Part shown: piece after piece, positions 1 to 31,799 of the stretch
How positions within the stretch are numbered: the stretch's first letter is position 1
Layout of the letters: every line of letters begins with the position of its first letter
Sequence record: NC_061440.1
Reading direction: 5' to 3' (one strand)
Length of the DNA stretch: 64,000 nucleotides
The notes under the pieces: generated by a model
What the model was told of the DNA's origin: nothing
What the model saw: the letters and a program-made list of their open reading frames with translations, nothing else
Database searches by the model: none
Program-made: the position numbers and the translations under genes

Positions 1-1506
1 ATGGAAATGTTTTCGCTTGGCCTGGAAGTTCGGGCCATTCGAACTGTCACGAACCCAAAGATTAAGGAAGGTTACCGGACGGCCATGATGGGTCGTCTGG
101 GGCCATCCCACTTTAGTTCGGAAGTAACTCGCAAAGCATTCCGCCGCGTTACAAAGCTGGTGGAAGTGAAAAGCGAAATAATTGATTGGGAAGACTTGCT
201 GGAAGATCCGAACCTGAGCGAGGAGTTCAGGGACAGTCTGCGTGAAGCGGATGAGAAGCCAGCAAAGACCATGAAAGGTTTTGACAAGATATTCGACAGT
301 CTGGAGAAGTATCGCCAGCGCCGTGATATCATGAACCTCGGTAAGCAGATTGCTAAAGACTTTAGCGATGCAGACCCAGAGGAGTTCGACGAACAAACGT
401 ACATGCAAGAGCTGGCTGATAAGCTGGGTCAAGCGCAGCGTGGCACCCGTAAGACCGAGAAGGTTTGGTCATTCGGTGGCAAGAAGTCGAACGCATTAAA
501 GTTGGCGAAACAGGTAATCACTAACCCGAAAGAGGTGATGTACAAAACTGGCTTTAAAACATACGACGACAAGAACGGCGGCTGGCCGACTACTGGCGTT
601 GTGTTGTTAGCTGGTTCAACGTCTGGTGGTAAGTCTGTTATCTCGATGAACGTTGCGGATGCAATGGCGAAAGTGAACGGCATTCACTGTCTCAAGGTCA
701 CACTCGAAATGACCGCCGAGCAGGAAATGAAGCGTATGCTTTCGATGATCAGCGGTATTGACTTCTGGAAGATCAAGCAAGGCAAGTTGACCAAGCGTGA
801 ACAAGCCAAGCTGATGGATGCAGCCAAGAAGTACGATAAGATGGTACGCAAAGCTAAGGGACGTAACTCGTTTACCTCACCTGAGCGTGGAATGTCGATT
901 GATGATGTTCTGTGTATGTCTATTCCGTATGGCGTTCACGTAACCTTCATCGACTACGTTGGTCTGTTAGAGGGTATCGACAACGATAACCAATGGCGCG
1001 AACTGTCTACGATTGTCCGTAAAGCGAAAGTACACGCGAACGCAACAGGCCAGCTTGTTGTTATCCTGTGTCAGCTTGATGACCAGACAGGTCGTATTCG
1101 TTACTCTGGTGGTATGCGTGAACACGCCGACGTGGTGTGGGCATGGAACTACTCTGACCCAGAGATTCGTGAAGGTAAGCGCATCCCTGTTCAGGTAATG
1201 AAAGCGCGTGATGGTGAGTTGTTCGAAATGGCGTTGGAAGACGCATTCGAAACGATGACTGTACGCGATGCTGGCTCTGACGTTCCTGCCACAAGATCGA
1301 ATGCTATTGCTGCGGACGATATGGAAGGTAAGGGAGATTCCAAGAAGAAATTCGGAAAAGGTAATTTCAAGAAGAAAGATAAAATTGAGATTAAGAAGTC
1401 TCGTCGTGGCGCTGCTGCATTCCTTAACTCGGGAGCTGATAGCGATGATGACGATGGCGACCTACCGAAGAAAAAGAAAAAGCGCAAGTCGTATGACGTA
1501 GCTTAG
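1..1506 (+). CDS. DnaB-like replicative helicase
   Basis: Walker A GSTSGGKS, TLEM motif, Walker B FIDY, LCQL and KARDG motifs of the DnaB/SF4 family; K/D-rich C-terminal tail. It starts at base 1, so the 5' end may be incomplete. Confidence 0.88.
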   Translation: MEMFSLGLEVRAIRTVTNPKIKEGYRTAMMGRLGPSHFSSEVTRKAFRRVTKLVEVKSEIIDWEDLLEDPNLSEEFRDSLREADEKPAKTMKGFDKIFDSLEKYRQRRDIMNLGKQIAKDFSDADPEEFDEQTYMQELADKLGQAQRGTRKTEKVWSFGGKKSNALKLAKQVITNPKEVMYKTGFKTYDDKNGGWPTTGVVLLAGSTSGGKSVISMNVADAMAKVNGIHCLKVTLEMTAEQEMKRMLSMISGIDFWKIKQGKLTKREQAKLMDAAKKYDKMVRKAKGRNSFTSPERGMSIDDVLCMSIPYGVHVTFIDYVGLLEGIDNDNQWRELSTIVRKAKVHANATGQLVVILCQLDDQTGRIRYSGGMREHADVVWAWNYSDPEIREGKRIPVQVMKARDGELFEMALEDAFETMTVRDAGSDVPATRSNAIAADDMEGKGDSKKKFGKGNFKKKDKIEIKKSRRGAAAFLNSGADSDDDDGDLPKKKKKRKSYDVA

Positions 1507-1757: not shown

Positions 1758-2553
1758 GTTCGAAGGTCCGTACGGACTCACTGAGACAGAGCACATGGTC
1801 CCACGCTGGACGTACCCTGTTAAGCATGGACAGGTTCGTCGTGTTGAAGCGTGGGAACTCGATACGATGCCGAATGCCACGCAGCAAGTGCGCATGGTAA
1901 ACGATATTCATGCAATCCACAGTACACCTGTAGAGGACTACGATGACGAACTCGACCTCGATGAAGAAGCCGCAACGATCTCAAAAACTGAGTCCAGACT
2001 TCTTATCAAGCCTCGACTCAATGAAATCCGCTCCCGTCACAACAAAGACCACATTAGTCCAGAGAACGTCTTCACCGTCAGCGACGAAGTAATTGATGGT
2101 GCGCTGGACAGCATTGACAGCTACTCGGAAACATTCCGCGAGTACCTGATGCACCATGTGTTCAGCCCGATACTTGGGTTTGACATTGCGGCAGGTGAAG
2201 TGGAAGCAATCGCCAAAGACTGTCTCAAAACAGATCTTGAGATAGACAGCGAGCTTGTGCCGTATATCGAGCGCGTAGGGCTTGCTAACGTTCTTGGCGC
2301 TATGCTTACGAAGTCCCAGTCAGTGCCCGAACAAGTACGCGCAGACGTTCTGAAAGACTGGTTAATTAAAGCGTTTGATGACGTTCGCGCAGAGCACAAA
2401 GCGAAGAACACCACCAATGGTCTTCGTGCGCAAATTCGTCGTCTAATGCACGGTAACACCGACCTTGTTGCTAAAGGCACTGGCACGGGTATCGGTACGA
2501 CAAGAGGATTTTCTGAGTACAGGAAACAGATGAACGAGAATGGCCAAGCCTAA
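1750..2553 (+). CDS. hypothetical protein (position suits a terminase small subunit)
   Basis: GTG start overlapping the upstream stop; overlaps the terL start; function inferred from position only. Confidence 0.55.
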   Translation: MSKFEGPYGLTETEHMVPRWTYPVKHGQVRRVEAWELDTMPNATQQVRMVNDIHAIHSTPVEDYDDELDLDEEAATISKTESRLLIKPRLNEIRSRHNKDHISPENVFTVSDEVIDGALDSIDSYSETFREYLMHHVFSPILGFDIAAGEVEAIAKDCLKTDLEIDSELVPYIERVGLANVLGAMLTKSQSVPEQVRADVLKDWLIKAFDDVRAEHKAKNTTNGLRAQIRRLMHGNTDLVAKGTGTGIGTTRGFSEYRKQMNENGQA

Positions 2554-5368
2554 GAAGGGTCCAGCTTTCTCCCTACGTCCAAAACGCATTGCGGCCTTTG
2601 ATGCGCTGCTTGGTGATGACGTACAGGTAGAGGCTTCCGCTGACATGGACTTCTTGTCAGATAATAGTTCAAGTGCGATTAACTTCTTGGAGAAGGGTGA
2701 GGTTAATATCGTTGACTTGGTTGAGGGCGCACTGGAACAACGCACCCTCGTACCACGCGATTTGAAGTTCGACGACAGTTCAATGCCTAAGGCGAAACAC
2801 TTCCTTGAGTGGTGCACTAGTCCCGACTTCCTTAAAGCCGAACCGTATCTTGAACAGGCCTTGATTGGTCTTCGCTTATTCGGAGAGATTTGCGTTCGCT
2901 GCTCTCCTAATCTGCAATGGATGTACACTGAAAACCACGAGCCACAAGAAACAACTGCCGCAATCGAGGAACACTTGCACCTGCTACATAATGGTGTGTG
3001 CCCTCATTGCGGCGCTCGTCGTTCTGAGATGATTCGCAAGAAAGAGATGAACTTCTACAACGAACTGGCTGTGAACGCCGGACAGCGTTGTGTGATTGCT
3101 TCAACTCCTGTTGTGACTTCTCGTGGTATCATGCCGATTGGTCATATGATGGTCGGCCACGACACTCCTGGTTTCCATAAGCCTCGTCGCAACTTCAATG
3201 CGCATAACGGGCGAGAGATCAAGAACGTCAGTCAGGTGTATGTCTCCGATGAAAGCCCAACGAAAGTCGTGACGCTTGCAAACGGCATGTGGATTGAAGC
3301 AACTCATGAGCACCCTGTGCGTACTGAGCAAGGCTTCAAGAAAGTGTCTAAGCTGAAAGTAGGCGACCGTATCGAGATCAAACTCGGTACGAACTCGTGG
3401 GGTAAGATTCAACGTCCTGTATCTATCTATGATGCTGGACTCTCCGTGCGCGAAGAAGCTCTGCGGTATATCGCTGATCGCTCGCTCGCAATCGGAGACA
3501 AGATGCAGTATGTGTCCGATGATGTTGACGCGCTACAGATGGTGTGGTCGATTCTTATCAATGCTGGCCATATGCCTCAAGTGTTACATGACACGCGAAG
3601 CTGGAGCATTGTTTATGATCTCAATGAGCCGCCTGAGTGCCGCTCTCTCCATGTCGAAGTGCAGTCAGTAGATGAAGGCACACCTCAGGTAACGTATGAC
3701 CTACAGATGGAGGGCTTGCCTCAATTCGTAGCGTCAGGCCTGCTGCATCACAATAGCGGTAAGTCGGTCGTGGTAGCGATGATCTCTACCTATCTGACAC
3801 ACAGACTGCTTATGTCGCAATCGCCTACTGGTATCTTGAGCATCGACAGCACAACCGTATTGCACGGAACGTTCGTCGCGCTGACCCAGAAGCAAGCGGC
3901 AGATACACTCTGGACACCGTACTTCAACTATATCATGGGTAGTCCTTGGTTCCAAGCCTATCACGATCTGATTCGCAAACACGAACGCCGTTACGGCATC
4001 GAGGTGATGAAGATTCGTGATACGTTCGTTCTGTACGGACACAGGAACTTCGTTATCTACCCAGCAGGTCCAGATGGTCGTATTCTTCGTGGTCGAACTC
4101 GTGTACTGGCGGTGATCGATGAGGTGGCGTATTTCGACAACGACGCCCAATCCAAAAAGATCAAAGTCAGTGCTGGTGCTGTATACGGAGCACTCGACCG
4201 TTCACTTGCAACCGTGCGAGCGAAAGAGAAACGACAAGTCGAGGCAGGCTACGACGAGGCATTCACGGGCTACTTCTGCAACATCAGTAGTCCGGTACAC
4301 GCTCGTGATAAAATCAATGAGCTGTTGCGTATGTCAGTAGGCTCGGAGAAGCTGTTAGGCATTCATGCTCCTACGTGGAAGATGAACCCTGACATGCCAC
4401 GTAACTCCGAGTTCCTTGTCGAGGCATTCCGTCGTGACCCTGTTGGTGCAGCGCGAGATTATGGCGCAGAAGCACCGTTGTCTGCTAACCCGTTCATCAC
4501 GCAGCCTACGTTTATCGCAGATGCTATCCGTGAGAAAGGTCGTTCGATGTGTACCTACACGCATCATATCATTCGACACAAAGACGGTGAACGCCAGCGC
4601 TACGGTAGTCTGGTAAAAGCGGCAACGACAACCAAAGCGTCCATCCTTGCGATAGATGCTGGCTTCTCGAATAACAGCTTCGCACTCGTAACAGGCTCGC
4701 GTGGTGATGATGGTATTATCAGTGTTGACTGTCTGGTGGAGATCGTTCCAAAGCCGGGCATACCTCTGAACTATACTCTCATCTTTGACGAACTGCTTAT
4801 ACCTCTGTGTAAAGCGCGTAACGTGCGCGTCATGCTTGCTGACCAGTGGCAGTCTCTCAAACTGCTGCAAGACGCCAAGCTGAAAGTTGATTCGATTGAG
4901 GAGTCCGATCAGTACAGCCTGAAATATCAGGACATGTGGACTGTGAAGACGATGTTTGAATCCACTCCATCGAAAATCAGCTTACCGCGCATGACTCACG
5001 CCAACACGATTATGGACACGCTGAAATACGATGGCGATGAATATCCTCAGTGCTTCGAGAACAAACCAACAGAGCACTTGATCATGCAGCTCCAGACAGT
5101 GCAGGACACTGGGCGTAGCGTAATCAAGAACACAGGTGCAACCGATGACTTGTGGCGAGCGATGGCACTCATGGTCTATGGCTTCGAGTGTGGTAACTAC
5201 GACGAGTATCTGACGAAAGCGCCAGAAGTAGCAATCAACCGTGACCCGAATCGCTTGGGTCGTGTGGCGCATAGGCTTAACTCTGGCTCTGCTTCTATTG
5301 GCCGTCCACAGCTTAGTGGTGGTCGTGTTCTTGGCTCTGCGCGTACTCGGATGATCGGCCGTAAGTAA
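2540..5368 (+). CDS. terminase large subunit, intein-interrupted
   Basis: Walker A GQR/SGKS split by the intein, Walker B VIDEVAYF, RuvC-like AIDAGFSNN nuclease motif, N-terminal CxxC...CxxC. Confidence 0.9.
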   Translation: MAKPKKGPAFSLRPKRIAAFDALLGDDVQVEASADMDFLSDNSSSAINFLEKGEVNIVDLVEGALEQRTLVPRDLKFDDSSMPKAKHFLEWCTSPDFLKAEPYLEQALIGLRLFGEICVRCSPNLQWMYTENHEPQETTAAIEEHLHLLHNGVCPHCGARRSEMIRKKEMNFYNELAVNAGQRCVIASTPVVTSRGIMPIGHMMVGHDTPGFHKPRRNFNAHNGREIKNVSQVYVSDESPTKVVTLANGMWIEATHEHPVRTEQGFKKVSKLKVGDRIEIKLGTNSWGKIQRPVSIYDAGLSVREEALRYIADRSLAIGDKMQYVSDDVDALQMVWSILINAGHMPQVLHDTRSWSIVYDLNEPPECRSLHVEVQSVDEGTPQVTYDLQMEGLPQFVASGLLHHNSGKSVVVAMISTYLTHRLLMSQSPTGILSIDSTTVLHGTFVALTQKQAADTLWTPYFNYIMGSPWFQAYHDLIRKHERRYGIEVMKIRDTFVLYGHRNFVIYPAGPDGRILRGRTRVLAVIDEVAYFDNDAQSKKIKVSAGAVYGALDRSLATVRAKEKRQVEAGYDEAFTGYFCNISSPVHARDKINELLRMSVGSEKLLGIHAPTWKMNPDMPRNSEFLVEAFRRDPVGAARDYGAEAPLSANPFITQPTFIADAIREKGRSMCTYTHHIIRHKDGERQRYGSLVKAATTTKASILAIDAGFSNNSFALVTGSRGDDGIISVDCLVEIVPKPGIPLNYTLIFDELLIPLCKARNVRVMLADQWQSLKLLQDAKLKVDSIEESDQYSLKYQDMWTVKTMFESTPSKISLPRMTHANTIMDTLKYDGDEYPQCFENKPTEHLIMQLQTVQDTGRSVIKNTGATDDLWRAMALMVYGFECGNYDEYLTKAPEVAINRDPNRLGRVAHRLNSGSASIGRPQLSGGRVLGSARTRMIGRK
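3089..3754 (+). mobile_element. intein (222 aa) with only a remnant homing endonuclease, in the terminase Walker A
   Basis: Starts CVIASTPV, block B ATHEHP, ends LLHHN followed by Ser(+1); removal restores GQRSGKS. Confidence 0.92.
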
Positions 5369-20343: not shown

Positions 20344-20731
20344 CGCCAGTGATGCAGAAGCGCGGGCGTACTATCAGAAACAACATGAACGCGCCGAAGC
20401 CACCATGCGAGAAATCTGGGCGTTACGTGGCTGGACGATTCGTTGGGAGTGGCACAACGGCATCTGCGATGATTGTGAGTTCCTGTTCGACGAAACAGGC
20501 AAGCAGTTGTGTCCGTACCACGATGCCATTCCGCAAGAAAGTCAGGTGGCGTACAATCTTGAGAAGCATCGCCTCAATGTGACGTACACCAAGAAATCTG
20601 TAAAATTGATTAACAAGCAAGACCCAAATCCAGTTGAAGGTAAAGCTGACACGTTACGCCAGGCTTATATCAATTGGCTGTTGGCCCTTGAGAAACAAAA
20701 AGCTGAGGAACAAAAGTGCGCCACGACTTAA
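20321..20731 (+). CDS. hypothetical protein with Cys cluster
   Basis: CDDC...CPYH. Confidence 0.6.
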   Translation: MYLPLGDNASDAEARAYYQKQHERAEATMREIWALRGWTIRWEWHNGICDDCEFLFDETGKQLCPYHDAIPQESQVAYNLEKHRLNVTYTKKSVKLINKQDPNPVEGKADTLRQAYINWLLALEKQKAEEQKCATT

Positions 20732-21237
20732 CCGAACTCCCTATTTCCGTAGAGCAAGCAGAGCACATCATGGCCAGTGTGTTTACTCTGGCTGGTGCTT
20801 CTAAATCGAAGCGTCGTGCGACTGCTGCAATGCTCATTCACTTCCACGACGGCTTCCCTACGATTATCAGTAGCGGTGTCAACGGTACTATGCCTGGCGA
20901 AAGCAACGTCATGGAAACTCCTGACTTGACGCTCTCACTTAACACTGTTATCCATGCAGAGGTGAACTGCCTCAATCGCATGGAAGAATACAGTCTGTGG
21001 GCAAACGAACAGGACATTCTGTTCTGTACCGATTCGCCGTGTCCGAACTGTCTGGCTGATCTCGAAGCCGAAGGCGTGAAGACCGTTGTGTATGCGCGTG
21101 AGTATCGACTAACTGATCATCTGGACGCATCTTCGATTAAGATGTTCTGTCTGGATATGAAGTCCGTTGAGCACCGTATGCTTCGCGGTATCGAGCGCAT
21201 GAACGAAGTTATCGCAACAACACCAGCGTCTGAATAA
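20716..21237 (+). CDS. dCMP deaminase family protein
   Basis: SGVNG, HAEVNCL and SPCPNC zinc motifs. Confidence 0.88.
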   Translation: MRHDLTELPISVEQAEHIMASVFTLAGASKSKRRATAAMLIHFHDGFPTIISSGVNGTMPGESNVMETPDLTLSLNTVIHAEVNCLNRMEEYSLWANEQDILFCTDSPCPNCLADLEAEGVKTVVYAREYRLTDHLDASSIKMFCLDMKSVEHRMLRGIERMNEVIATTPASE

Positions 21238-21951: not shown

Positions 21952-22434
21952 GTGGAACCTTTCCTGAAAGATATCAAAGACCGTTTCGCTTCTGCATTGG
22001 GAATCGACCCTAAAGTTCTCGATGCTCCTGTGGACGAAGAATCCGCTGAACGTTTTGGTGCGTTCCTGCGTGAGGACCAGCGCAAAATCAAAGTAGGTCT
22101 TGCGCTCTGCCATCTTCAAATCCCAGATGATGTTCGCTATGATCTGCTGCATAATCATCTGGACACTACTGACCGCGTACTACGTGAAACGTTCGACGGT
22201 CTCGCTGCCCGACTCGTTGCTGTTAACAGCGCAGGTGGTGGCGATGAAAAACAAGCGGCGTCTGGTGCGTTTCGTCTAGCTATGCTGATGAACATTCTGG
22301 GCTTCGATGACCAAACACTGAAAGGTGTGTTAACCGACCCAAGCCTCTCTCGTCAGGCTGGTCTTATTGCAATGACTGGCCTGAACGATATGGGTCAGAA
22401 AATCCAATCGCTTTACGACGAGAAAACAAAATGA
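21952..22434 (+). CDS. hypothetical protein
   Basis: AAGGA RBS, GTG start. Confidence 0.65.
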   Translation: MEPFLKDIKDRFASALGIDPKVLDAPVDEESAERFGAFLREDQRKIKVGLALCHLQIPDDVRYDLLHNHLDTTDRVLRETFDGLAARLVAVNSAGGGDEKQAASGAFRLAMLMNILGFDDQTLKGVLTDPSLSRQAGLIAMTGLNDMGQKIQSLYDEKTK

Positions 22435-22595
22435 GCAACCCGACTAATCCATTGGCAGATTACTTCAACGCTGACGCAGTTATCCCAGGTGTAGACGACG
22501 CAGAAGATCGTGTCGAAGCTATGCGTGACGGTGGCGGCGAAGTTGTTGACGATAAAGATGCTGATGGCTGTGAAAGCGGCGCCTGCAAAATCTAA
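22431..22595 (+). CDS. 54-aa acidic peptide ending in an NrdA-like redox tail DGCESGACKI (not in ORF track)
   Basis: ATGA coupling to the upstream gene, terminator directly after; translation MSNPTNPLADYFNADAVIPGVDDAEDRVEAMRDGGGEVVDDKDADGCESGACKI. Confidence 0.8.
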   Translation: MSNPTNPLADYFNADAVIPGVDDAEDRVEAMRDGGGEVVDDKDADGCESGACKI

Positions 22596-22598
22596 CTC

Positions 22599-22626
22599 AT
22601 GGGGCCTAGTGCCCCATTTCTGTTTT
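22599..22626 (+). terminator. probable rho-independent terminator
   Basis: atggggc-ctagt-gccccat then tttctgtttt. Confidence 0.7.
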
Positions 22627-22636
22627 GGGGAATTTT

Positions 22637-25600: not shown

Positions 25601-25904
25601 CCTGCTGGTAAAGATGTTCGGCCAGAACAAGCCATTCATCGTCGTGCGCCGTGACGCTATCGTGGAGAACGAAAAGCGTTTCGGTGATCGCGTTTACTTC
25701 TCTAATGGCGTTAACACCGTCACTGTGCCAAACATTCAAGGGCTTGACCTGGGTGATAAGCTCTACATTGCAGAAGACGGCGATGTGTATGAGTGGCATC
25801 CTCACTTCGAGCGTCCTTACGAAGCAGTATCGAACAACCAGACAGAAGCTCTGGCGTTTGGTCTGCATCCCATTGTCTTCCACACCGACACACGGAACAG
25901 CTAA
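25560..25904 (+). CDS. hypothetical protein
   Basis: ORF coupled to thymidylate synthase by TAATG. Confidence 0.6.
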   Translation: MPTPVILLKQQTRDLLVKMFGQNKPFIVVRRDAIVENEKRFGDRVYFSNGVNTVTVPNIQGLDLGDKLYIAEDGDVYEWHPHFERPYEAVSNNQTEALAFGLHPIVFHTDTRNS

Positions 25905-27001
25905 TGTCACAACCACTTGATTTACGAAACCCGAACCACTACGAACTGTACTCTCTCCATAGCGTGGACGAGCAGTATATCAACCTGTGCGATGCAATCA
26001 TTGCTACTGGTACGCAAGAGTCCGATGCTGGTCGCACCGACGATACGTGGACGACTCTGATTGGCGTTGGTTTCCAGTTGCAGAACACGCACATTGCTTT
26101 CCCTGCACTGCTGTCCGCACGTAAGAACTGGAGCGCAGCCGTCGATGAGATGTGCTGGATGGCTCGCGGTGAAACGAACATCAACACTCTCGGCTCTAAG
26201 ATCTGGGACGAGTGGGCAGATGAAAGCGGTGAGTGCGGTCCAATCTACGGCGAGATGTGGCGTCGTTGGCCTGACATTAAAGCGTTCTTCGACTACACGC
26301 AGCCTATGGCGTCTTGCCCTACTGCCGATGTTATTCGTGTGCGTGACGAAATTCTGCGTATGCGTCAGGACGGCTACATCGAAACGCAACTGACTGACGG
26401 TCGCATCCTGTTTGAAGGTGAGATTGACCAGTTCGCTAACGCTCTGTATCACATCGAAAACCGTTCGCGTTCTCGCCGCATTCGTGTGCAGGGTTTCAAC
26501 CCAAGCTATGTGAACATGCAGGGTCTTCCTCCGTGTCACACTGAGTTTGAGTTCAACGTAACGAAGTCCACCAAGTACGAACAGGCGCAGGCCGATGCTC
26601 GCGGTCAGACGGTAGCGCAGGACAGTCTGCATATCACTGTCACCATGCGCAGCAACGACTGCCTGCTGGGGCGTCCTTTCAACATCATCGGCTACAGTGC
26701 AATGCACCAACTGATTGCGAAGTGGGCTGGCTTGAACGTTGGTGGCTTTACGCTGAATACGACGAACACCCACCTGTACGATCATCACCGTGAAGCATAC
26801 GCTAAACAGCGTGAGCAATGGATGACGTTGCGTGAACGTATGCAAACAACTGGCGAGCCTGTGAAATATCCTGTGCTCGAAATCTCCGATGATGTTATCG
26901 GTCTGACAGCTAAAGAACTGCTGGACAACGTTAACATCGACTGGTTCGAGCTGGTGGACTACAGCCCGATGCCAGCAGTAAAAGGACGTGTGACCAAATG
27001 A
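25904..27001 (+). CDS. thyA: thymidylate synthase
   Basis: GPIYGEMWR, RSRR, LPPCH, MRSND..LG.PFN (dUMP-specifying Asn), HLYDHH. Confidence 0.93.
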   Translation: MSQPLDLRNPNHYELYSLHSVDEQYINLCDAIIATGTQESDAGRTDDTWTTLIGVGFQLQNTHIAFPALLSARKNWSAAVDEMCWMARGETNINTLGSKIWDEWADESGECGPIYGEMWRRWPDIKAFFDYTQPMASCPTADVIRVRDEILRMRQDGYIETQLTDGRILFEGEIDQFANALYHIENRSRSRRIRVQGFNPSYVNMQGLPPCHTEFEFNVTKSTKYEQAQADARGQTVAQDSLHITVTMRSNDCLLGRPFNIIGYSAMHQLIAKWAGLNVGGFTLNTTNTHLYDHHREAYAKQREQWMTLRERMQTTGEPVKYPVLEISDDVIGLTAKELLDNVNIDWFELVDYSPMPAVKGRVTK

Positions 27002-29669: not shown

Positions 29670-31799
29670 ATGATCATCAAGCCGCCTACTATGAAGGAAA
29701 TCAACAAGCTGGATAAACCCTGGCGTGGTATGAGTTTCTTCGCAGGTTGCGGTGGATCTTCTACCGGTCACAAGATGGCCGGTATCAACATCCTGTTGAG
29801 TAACGAGTTCGTGGATAGTGCCCGCGAGTCTTACGAAGCAAACCATCCGACTACTAAAGTGCTGCCGCATGATATTCGTCGTCTGGACCCGAGCAAGCTC
29901 ATGCGTTATTGTGGCTTGGCGAAAGGCGAACTGGATTTACTTGACGGCAGTCCTCCGTGCTTTACCGAAGACACCATCATTCATACAGCAGACGGCATGA
30001 AGTTCATCTCGGACATGAATGTCGGCGATCAAGCAATGACCTCTGTTGGTCGTTACTTCCCTGTGTACGATACTATGGTTCGTCCGTATGTCGGCACGAT
30101 GCACAAAATCGAAACTCTGCTGGGCGCAAACAACGCTACACCAGAGCATCCGTTCTTTGTCAGACGCAGCATTCCTACTGGCGGCTACACTGACCCGTTC
30201 TGGTGTGATGCGAAAGACGTTCAGGAAGGTGACCTGTTAGGTAGCCCGCGCACTACGCCTGACATGGGACTCGACGTGTATCAGTCTCAACTCGATCAGC
30301 TGCCGAAGCAGATTGCAGAGTGGAGCACATTCCCTGAGTTCTGGTGGATGGTTGGACACTGGTGTGATCGCGGTTCGATTGAAACAGTGAGCGGTGTTGA
30401 AGTCGTTAGCTTTGAGTCGCACTCAAGCCTCGAAAACGCAATGATTGAGCAGGCGTTTGACGCGCTGAAAATCAGCAGCCTGAACCGTATCGACACGATG
30501 ACAGCACAACGCAAAACGTTCCGTATCGTTATGGACGCAGAGCTGGTGCAGTTCTTACGCCGATTCGTCAGTCAGGGCAACAACAAGTTCTCTCGTCGTC
30601 TGCCTGCGATTGTCTTCCACCTGACAGTCGAATTGAAGCAACAGTTCATTCTCGGTTGTGCCGGTCATGACTATGTGACTGGTATGGGAACAGGCTTGGC
30701 GATCACCTCAGATAGCCGTCGCTTCCTGATTGAGCTGAACTACCTGTGCTGTTCTGCATTCAACCGACCGCTGTTCGATGGTCTGACTTGGGGCGACGTT
30801 TACTTCGGCAGCCCGATGACTCCGCGTGATCGTAACAGTGTTAAGCCTCTCATTGGCTTCCTGTTCCTGCAGGACGAACACAACTTCTTCCACGAGTTCG
30901 ATGACGCTGACCCGCATTTGTGGGTAGAAGTGATTGAGAACCTCGCGTATCAGGCGACATGTGACGTGTACAACTTCTCCGTTGAGACGGATGAAACATA
31001 CGTTGCAAACAGCATGGTCGTTCACAACTGCAAGGGCTTCTCTACTGCAGGTGTGAAAGAAGAAGGCTGGGGCAAGGAAGTTAAATACAGCGATAACAAG
31101 TATCAGCAGGTTGATGACCTGTTCGATCAGTATTGTCGTATGCTGGAAGGCATGAAGCCGAAGGTGTTCACTGCGGAAAACGTGAGTGGCCTTGTGAAGG
31201 GCGCATCGAAAGGTTACTTCCTTGAAATCATGAAGGAGTTCGACCGAATAGGTTATTACGTTCGAGCACCTATGCTTAATGCTGCGTGGCTTGGTGTGCC
31301 TCAATCGCGTGAGCGTATCATCTTTATGGGTGTACGCAAAGACGTTGCACACGCACTGGGTCACAAGACGGCTGCGGCCGCTGTGCCGAATGTTGTTCCG
31401 TGTGACAGTATGGCATTCCTTGCCGATGCTCTGCCGCATATTCTGCGATACAAGTCCACGAAGAAAGATATCATCACCTATCTTCCTGCGATGAACGGAC
31501 CTATGCCAACGATCACTGCTGCCGACGCCATTGCGTATGAGACCGCGCGATTCTCATCGGCTGGCTTCGTCGAGGACAACAAAGGTCATCGCCGTAAACT
31601 GACCATTGACGAACTCAAAGTGATATCGGGTTTGCCCTCAGACTACAAACTGAAAGGCAAATTCGAAGAACAGTGGGAACGTCTTGGTCGTATCTGTGTG
31701 CCTGCAATGACACACGCAGCGGCTAAAGCGCTCATCGAACACGTCCTGATTCCTTACGCGAAGAAACGTAAGAAGAAGCCAGGCGATATCTTTAAGTAA
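29670..31799 (+). CDS. C5-cytosine DNA methyltransferase homolog, intein-interrupted; predicted carboxymethyltransferase (CmoX-like)
   Basis: Motifs I FAGCGG, IV GSPPC, VI ENV, VIII PQSRER, IX RKLTIDE; motif X reads QWERLGRICVP instead of Q.GN.V. Confidence 0.9.
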   Translation: MIIKPPTMKEINKLDKPWRGMSFFAGCGGSSTGHKMAGINILLSNEFVDSARESYEANHPTTKVLPHDIRRLDPSKLMRYCGLAKGELDLLDGSPPCFTEDTIIHTADGMKFISDMNVGDQAMTSVGRYFPVYDTMVRPYVGTMHKIETLLGANNATPEHPFFVRRSIPTGGYTDPFWCDAKDVQEGDLLGSPRTTPDMGLDVYQSQLDQLPKQIAEWSTFPEFWWMVGHWCDRGSIETVSGVEVVSFESHSSLENAMIEQAFDALKISSLNRIDTMTAQRKTFRIVMDAELVQFLRRFVSQGNNKFSRRLPAIVFHLTVELKQQFILGCAGHDYVTGMGTGLAITSDSRRFLIELNYLCCSAFNRPLFDGLTWGDVYFGSPMTPRDRNSVKPLIGFLFLQDEHNFFHEFDDADPHLWVEVIENLAYQATCDVYNFSVETDETYVANSMVVHNCKGFSTAGVKEEGWGKEVKYSDNKYQQVDDLFDQYCRMLEGMKPKVFTAENVSGLVKGASKGYFLEIMKEFDRIGYYVRAPMLNAAWLGVPQSRERIIFMGVRKDVAHALGHKTAAAAVPNVVPCDSMAFLADALPHILRYKSTKKDIITYLPAMNGPMPTITAADAIAYETARFSSAGFVEDNKGHRRKLTIDELKVISGLPSDYKLKGKFEEQWERLGRICVPAMTHAAAKALIEHVLIPYAKKRKKKPGDIFK
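29958..31028 (+). mobile_element. intein (357 aa) with degenerate LAGLIDADG endonuclease, in the catalytic PC motif
   Basis: SPP/CFTEDT start, block B NATPEHPF, ends VVHN followed by Cys(+1), the catalytic cysteine. Confidence 0.93.

Follow-up and report, generated by a model that had tools for sequence, protein, structure and literature searches.

The sequence analysed, a window of 64,000 nt, corresponds to the first 64 kb of the genome of Erwinia phage pEa_SNUABM_22 (Accession No. MZ443785.1, Alexandravirus, 265,146 bp). On the plus strand at 22431..22595 it carries a small gene of 54 codons plus stop, with an ATG start and an open reading frame whose translation is the one given in the original prediction for this DNA. 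The gene had been described there as unannotated, but it is present in GenBank MZ443785.1 under the name pEaSNUABM22_00034, as a hypothetical protein. Its start codon overlaps the stop codon of the preceding ORF in an ATGA motif (22431..22434, plus strand), indicating that the two ORFs are translationally coupled, as had been proposed. The only Shine-Dalgarno-like signal upstream is a weak GAG, and an overlap of 1, 4 or 14 nt was retained at this junction in all ten relatives compared. On the 3′ side, a terminator-like hairpin (22599..22617; seven pairs, five of them G-C) and a run of thymidines close the transcription unit (22599..22627, plus strand). This terminator, likewise foreseen, is conserved in the relatives and is annotated 3′ of the homolog in Klebsiella phage Miami. 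The dN/dS ratio of the small gene was 0.04-0.19 among close relatives and 0.24-0.33 in comparisons with SNUABM_3 and Y3, and the codons of the tail varied synonymously among relatives while the encoded residues were fixed. The small gene is a genuine gene under purifying selection (overall dN/dS 0.04-0.33).

The encoded protein is acidic, with 14 D/E against 4 K/R residues by direct count. All of its segments lie on the plus strand. Residues 1-20 (22431..22490) form an acidic N-terminal segment with a nearly invariant Phe12 and a short helical turn at residues 9-12. They are followed by a predicted amphipathic helix (residues 21-34, 22491..22532), a possible docking element, and by a GGGE hinge (residues 34-37, 22530..22541) that was invariant in an alignment of 13 family members. 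Residues 38-46 (22542..22568) constitute an acidic flexible arm with no predicted secondary structure, and residues 47-54 (22569..22592) the cysteine tail, consisting of C-x4-C plus two residues, as at the C-terminus of NrdA. AlphaFold2 modelling on the family alignment (mean pLDDT 65) gave the helix at 21-34 and the turn at 9-12 and left the chain unstructured from residue 35 on, in keeping with the acidic, flexible peptide originally described. The 54-aa protein had no match in Pfam, neither to the catalytic ten-stranded barrel (Ribonuc_red_lgC) nor to the N-terminal ATP-cone of NrdA. Searches with the anti-phage defence and counter-defence profiles of PADLOC gave no match for the small protein, the upstream ORF or the fused relatives described below.

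The upstream coupled ORF (21952..22434, plus strand) encodes 160 aa, is predicted to be all-helical and is confined to this phage group. It matched nothing in Pfam, PHROG or PADLOC, and its all-helical AlphaFold2 model (pLDDT 66) yielded no fold match (best E = 1.6). Genes of nucleotide metabolism lie on both sides of the pair: a dCMP deaminase gene at 20716..21237 (plus strand; Pfam PF00383, E = 2.9e-10), so annotated in Y3, Yoloswag and SNUABM_5, and a thymidylate synthase gene at 25904..27001 (plus strand; Pfam PF00303, E = 1.1e-56). Synteny with nucleotide-metabolism genes was also observed in Y3, Yoloswag and SNUABM_5, and in phage RAY the neighbours of the small gene encode thymidylate synthase, NrdB, NTP pyrophosphohydrolase, thymidine kinase and DHFR.

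A family of small phage proteins

When the 54-aa peptide was used as a tblastn query, matches were obtained in 83 phage records; the conservation in related phages that the original prediction had proposed to look for was thus found. A protein search with the single sequence returned just two matches, and the 13-member family alignment was used instead. This search yielded 76 clusters of proteins of 38-94 aa, most of them from contigs of 200-300 kb. Without exception, these 76 small relatives end in C-x(2-4)-C followed by exactly two residues, the last being I in 75 of them and L in one; among background ORFs the frequency of the end-pattern C-x(2-4)-C-x-I/L is about 0.15%. Of the 76 relatives, 71 contain GGGE. 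The spacing between the two cysteines is four residues in 54 relatives, two in 17 and three in five, so that the CX4C tail expected of the homologs was found in the majority and replaced by CX2C or CX3C in 22. When 1.84 billion representative proteins were searched with a profile, 48 clusters were detected, and the module was C-terminal in every one. In 17 of these clusters the proteins are larger (115-462 aa), and their N-terminal domains, of at least three unrelated kinds, had no match in Pfam. The protein of the window shows every family feature, i.e. GGGE, the cysteine pair, the two-residue end, the final I/L and the C-terminal position. The original prediction had foreseen neither a family with an N-terminal part of its own and a GGGE hinge, nor the CX2C and CX3C tails, nor the fusions to larger proteins.

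By sequence comparison, the module is that of phrog_10239 (PHROGs v4, 47 positions, function unknown), a family which covers the same module as the window gene and carries no annotation. Its profile was matched by Yoloswag gp34, SNUABM_5 gp34 and Miami gp244 (1e-10 to 2e-4). The window protein itself gave no phrog_10239 match at E <= 0.01, and its BLASTP values to the matching relatives were 2e-10 to 5e-12. Hosts of the named carriers are Erwinia, Dickeya, Serratia, Klebsiella, Raoultella, Salmonella and Yersinia. The carriers include nucleus-forming phages, namely PCH45, RAY and the whole genus of RAY; RAY gp108 was absent from the chimallivirus core tables. Full-text searching of the literature found no paper on the phrog_10239 family. 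The protein clusters P0004 and P0114 contain jumbo-phage proteins from contigs of about 266 kb that public records label as a Raoultibacter sp. MAG and as Salmonella enterica Infantis; these contigs probably belong to phages and were placed in the same bins as bacterial assemblies.

The gene directly upstream of the module differs between lineages. In PCH45 and SPLA10 this position is occupied by unrelated proteins of about 300 aa, and on a 325-kb metagenomic contig the module gene (L037:6001-6144) lies 1 nt after a 300-aa gene of the MYG1/UPF0160 family (L037:5097-5999). We also considered the small ORF and the upstream ORF of pEa_SNUABM_22 as a split form of the proteins that are fused in Yoloswag and SNUABM_5. 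Their positions are equivalent, but homology was undetectable (z 0.3-2.2; hhalign probability 1.2%), and such a relationship was not established.

Similarity to the C-terminus of NrdA

The peptide had been reported to end like E. coli NrdA, and this was fully upheld: its last 10 residues are identical, end to end, to E. coli NrdA residues 752-761 (10/10), and the likeness reached z = 8.5 in a permutation test. In a phmmer search of all PDB sequences E. coli R1 ranked first, with the end of the query on the end of the chain. The best PDB matches of the family profile were likewise NrdA C-termini, aligned end to end over the last 12 positions only. The last 10 residues of the phage protein are also contained in the last 12 of NrdA from three Erwinia species. 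These came from a scan of bacterial genomes with a degenerate DNA pattern, which gave at least 120 stretches, 79 of which were analysed; Erwinia was represented by the three species and not by Erwinia amylovora. In the 79 analysed matches the pattern ends a full-length nrdA (median 774 aa), and no functional free-standing small version of the tail was seen among them. One Enterobacterales MAG (L103) contained a 139-aa open frame with the NrdA tail at its end, which probably reflects a frame break or an assembly error in nrdA and not a separate gene for the tail. With recent DNA capture in mind, the tail codons were compared with E. coli nrdA; 28 of 33 nt matched, and the differences were synonymous.

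In the annotated E. coli genome, NrdA ends in C-x4-C plus two residues and the class Ib NrdE in C-x2-C plus two. Members of the family with CX4C tails other than the window protein gave z values of 3.5-6.1 for NrdA-tail likeness, while most CX2C and CX3C members were not significant (z mostly below 2.5). The CX2C tails were considered as mimics of NrdE and rejected as such: only the spacing pattern is held in common, no PDB matches were obtained and z values were mostly below 2.5. Some CX2C and CX3C carriers share a host with CX4C carriers. Tails of these two kinds, without significant likeness to NrdA, occur in 22 of the 76 relatives (~29%), and exact mimicry of NrdA is therefore not required. 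The N-terminal part and the GGGE hinge are conserved and have no NrdA counterpart. As judged from these comparisons, the likeness to NrdA is real, limited to the tail and strict only in part of the family. A resemblance of the N-terminal part to the tail of NrdB, suggested by eye in some relatives, was not significant and was also rejected; the family profile matched no R2 chain of the PDB at E <= 10, and permutation against the NrdB C-terminus gave z <= 2.3 in the family and -0.7 for the window protein.

Ribonucleotide reductase genes of the carrier phages

Three complete genomes (pEa_SNUABM_22, PCH45 and RAY) were searched with E. coli NrdA, B, E, F and H and a phage NrdA/B pair as queries; the search of RAY covered the genome except for 36 nt inside gp56. 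In the 265-kb genome of pEa_SNUABM_22 neither NrdA nor NrdB was found, the tail being the sole NrdA-like sequence, and Pfam analysis of its 30 longest ORFs revealed no ribonucleotide reductase (RNR) of any class. The statement that no other RNR sequence flanks the gene thus held for the window as well as for the whole genome. A boost of phage RNR, one of the roles originally envisaged, is inapplicable to pEa_SNUABM_22, which has no such enzyme. PCH45 encodes no NrdA (alpha) and an NrdB (beta) 81% identical to E. coli NrdB (L165:26783-27889); RAY likewise encodes no NrdA and an NrdB (gp88, L168:20001-21134) 76% identical to that of E. coli. Both NrdB proteins have kept the C-terminal alpha-docking segment. 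The presence of NrdB without alpha in these nucleus-forming jumbo phages implies a hybrid holoenzyme with host NrdA. A tail-less catalytic RNR partner is not encoded in pEa_SNUABM_22, PCH45 or RAY, and the E. coli NrdH query found no match in any of the three. According to a review (PMC13282480), more than half of the jumbo phages have a conserved beta-subunit cluster.

A similar NrdB adjoins the endolysin in phiEcoM-GJ1-like phages of about 52 kb. RAY also contains, just after the homing endonuclease gp89 (L168:22019-22090), a duplicate of the NrdB C-terminus (24 residues, 71% identity to E. coli), which was probably left behind when the endonuclease inserted.

Proposed function of the small gene

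In class I RNR, the active-site disulfide of one alpha chain is reduced after each turnover by two cysteines in the flexible tail of its partner chain, and thioredoxin or glutaredoxin reduce the tail and cannot reach the active site (PMC4078304, PMC5704485). Recycling of the tail is rate-limiting, and a second reductant route led to about 3-fold more activity (PMC4078304). Transfer between subunits, and also a split class II RNR, are reported or cited in PMC5704485. The family is conserved among jumbo phages and the three fully checked carriers lack an RNR large subunit, and the small gene therefore probably feeds or taps the DNA-precursor supply of the host. We tentatively prefer the reading, quite possible on the sequence evidence, that the 54-aa gene encodes a detached NrdA redox tail which is reduced by redoxins and re-reduces host NrdA in trans, raising dNTP output. 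This retains the core of the original prediction, a free-standing NrdA tail acting on RNR or its reductants, for which conservation, the matching tail of the host genus, the carriers without alpha and the gene context all speak.

In the preferred reading, the tail of the host class Ia RNR large subunit would be mounted on a short acidic carrier made up of a helix and a glycine hinge, in a phage that has no RNR of its own and would depend on host NrdA. Host thioredoxin or glutaredoxin would reduce the two cysteines of the free peptide as they do those of the native tail. The reduced peptide would then enter the active-site channel of NrdA while the enzyme's own tail is away for recycling, and would re-reduce the active-site disulfide there. 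A free tail present in high copy and reduced in solution could fill the channel in the absence of the native one, and the helix and the conserved Phe may dock the peptide. Such a second route of electron delivery might let each host enzyme yield more dNDP while phage DNA is being made. Relatives such as PCH45 and RAY would use the peptide on host alpha as well, there beside the phage beta subunit. A broader form of the proposal, about which we are slightly less confident, is that enterobacterial jumbo phages without alpha run a hybrid reductase in which NrdA of the host is joined by a free tail made by the phage, and often by a phage beta subunit as well, the tail multiplying the rate-limiting electron delivery.

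The preferred reading is supported by the 10-residue identity of the tail to E. coli and Erwinia NrdA, by the end-pattern found in 76 of 76 relatives and common to E. coli NrdA and NrdE, and by purifying selection on the small gene. The predicted disorder of the acidic arm, resembling the native tail, the lack of alpha in three carriers with a host-like beta in two of them, and the location among nucleotide-metabolism genes also support it. As a counterpoint, the likeness to NrdA spans only about 12 residues, and the CX2C and CX3C tails and the conserved N-terminal part and hinge, which lack an NrdA counterpart, also speak against it. The fusions to larger proteins add that the tail could serve those domains rather than RNR.

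The latter thought leads to a different reading, in which the module is a portable C-terminal dithiol arm, or one that recruits redoxins, for other phage proteins such as the upstream ORF or the fused N-terminal domains, and resembles NrdA through convergence on features that thioredoxin or glutaredoxin recognise. It would account for the attachment of the module to at least three unrelated N-terminal domains, for its constant coupling to or abutment on an upstream gene in the pEa_SNUABM_22 lineage, for its position next to a MYG1-type protein in another lineage and for the CX2C and CX3C variants that are not NrdA-like. However, the upstream partners differ between lineages, with no detectable homology among them, and a redox enzyme domain could be recognised in none. 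A match to the host tail in 10 of 10 residues is hard to obtain by convergence alone, and the pattern of carriers with beta and without alpha points to RNR; we therefore regard a portable arm as unlikely. Equally doubtful is the suggestion, made in the original prediction beside that of a booster, that the free tail acts as a decoy or inhibitor which soaks up reduced thioredoxin or glutaredoxin or blocks the NrdA channel, thereby damping or redirecting host redox and dNTP metabolism. The identical tail and the flexible acidic arm would suit this reading too. Substrate mimics can act as competitors no less than as helpers, and in yeast the small protein Sml1 interferes with the R1 tail. Yet the three checked carriers, lacking alpha, rely on host NrdA to make dNTPs de novo, a host-compatible beta is encoded by two of them, and the neighbouring genes consume RNR products. 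A lowered RNR output would oppose all of this, and the evidence thus appears to favour a booster over a decoy.

Two further explanations were weighed. Two invariant near-terminal cysteines, an acidic helical N-terminal part and a glycine-rich junction might belong to a metal-binding protein, two copies of which share Zn or Fe through four cysteines, or to a RiPP-like peptide with leader and core. pEa_SNUABM_22 does encode a 498-aa radical SAM protein (Radical_SAM plus Fer4_12; L005:8698-10191, at about 219.7-221.2 kb of the record), but this gene is about 197 kb away from the small gene, and no adjacent maturase, protease or exporter gene was found in the neighbourhoods of seven lineages. As the variable cysteine spacing (2-4) with a fixed two-residue end suits a redox tail better than a metal site, and a structured cysteine knuckle is not predicted by the model, we consider this explanation very improbable. 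That the gene is a decayed, functionless 3′ fragment of a captured nrdA, an outcome allowed for in the original prediction, would agree with the identical tail and the similar tail codons, but hardly deserves consideration in view of the conservation data. There is no further nrdA-like sequence upstream of the tail, dN/dS is low throughout, the family occurs in many phage genera with a conserved non-NrdA part of its own, and both coupling and terminator are conserved.

Comparison with known systems

The closest counterpart is the tail of the class Ia RNR alpha subunit itself (NrdA; C754/C759 in E. coli), with the same 10-residue end, C-x4-C and a disordered acidic arm; in the phage protein, by contrast, the tail sits on a 35-residue carrier (helix plus GGGE hinge) to which no RNR catalytic domain is attached. 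In the split class II RNR NrdJa/NrdJb of Pseudomonas aeruginosa, the C-terminal part of the large subunit is a separate polypeptide (PMC4520616, as cited in PMC5704485). Its two halves are encoded by adjacent genes of one organism and jointly form the enzyme, whereas the partner of the phage peptide would be the intact, tail-bearing NrdA of the host, the phage encoding no alpha. The phage NrdB genes of jumbo phages with NrdB only, which are auxiliary metabolic genes, likewise represent a host-reliant investment in ribonucleotide reduction (PMC13282480). NrdB is a complete subunit, however, and the window gene would contribute a tail segment only, to our knowledge the first such case in a phage. 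NrdJb reportedly carries redox cysteines. GrcA/YfiD is a 'spare part' for pyruvate formate-lyase which replaces the damaged glycyl-radical domain; it is folded and of cellular origin. By analogy, a small free-standing protein would in both cases copy a functional part from the C-terminus of a large enzyme and act on that enzyme in trans, the phage peptide differing in being a disordered dithiol tail encoded by a virus.

If the preferred reading is correct, a virus would tune a central host enzyme with extra copies of its mobile electron-carrying tail, and not with a replacement or an added subunit. This would constitute a new class of auxiliary metabolic gene, in which a detached disordered piece of a host enzyme is supplied in trans for speed. 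It would also provide a natural test of the long-discussed idea that recycling of the tail limits class I RNR turnover, and would explain the dNTP supply of jumbo phages without alpha, with genomes of 210-275 kb. A function would be assigned to the conserved 'hypothetical' family phrog_10239, and very short disordered phage ORFs might become readable functionally via their mimicry of host enzyme termini. Should the peptide be a decoy, the family would offer a small, naturally occurring probe for the interface between thioredoxin or glutaredoxin and RNR.

Other genes of the window

A DnaB-like replicative helicase is encoded at the very start of the record (1..1503, plus strand). Intein sequences were observed in two further plus-strand genes. 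In the 942-aa product of the gene at 2540..5365, an intein splicing domain is the sole Pfam match, and the gene at 29670..31799 encodes a C-5 cytosine DNA methyltransferase that is split by an intein (Pfam DNA_methylase, Intein_splicing and Hint_2).
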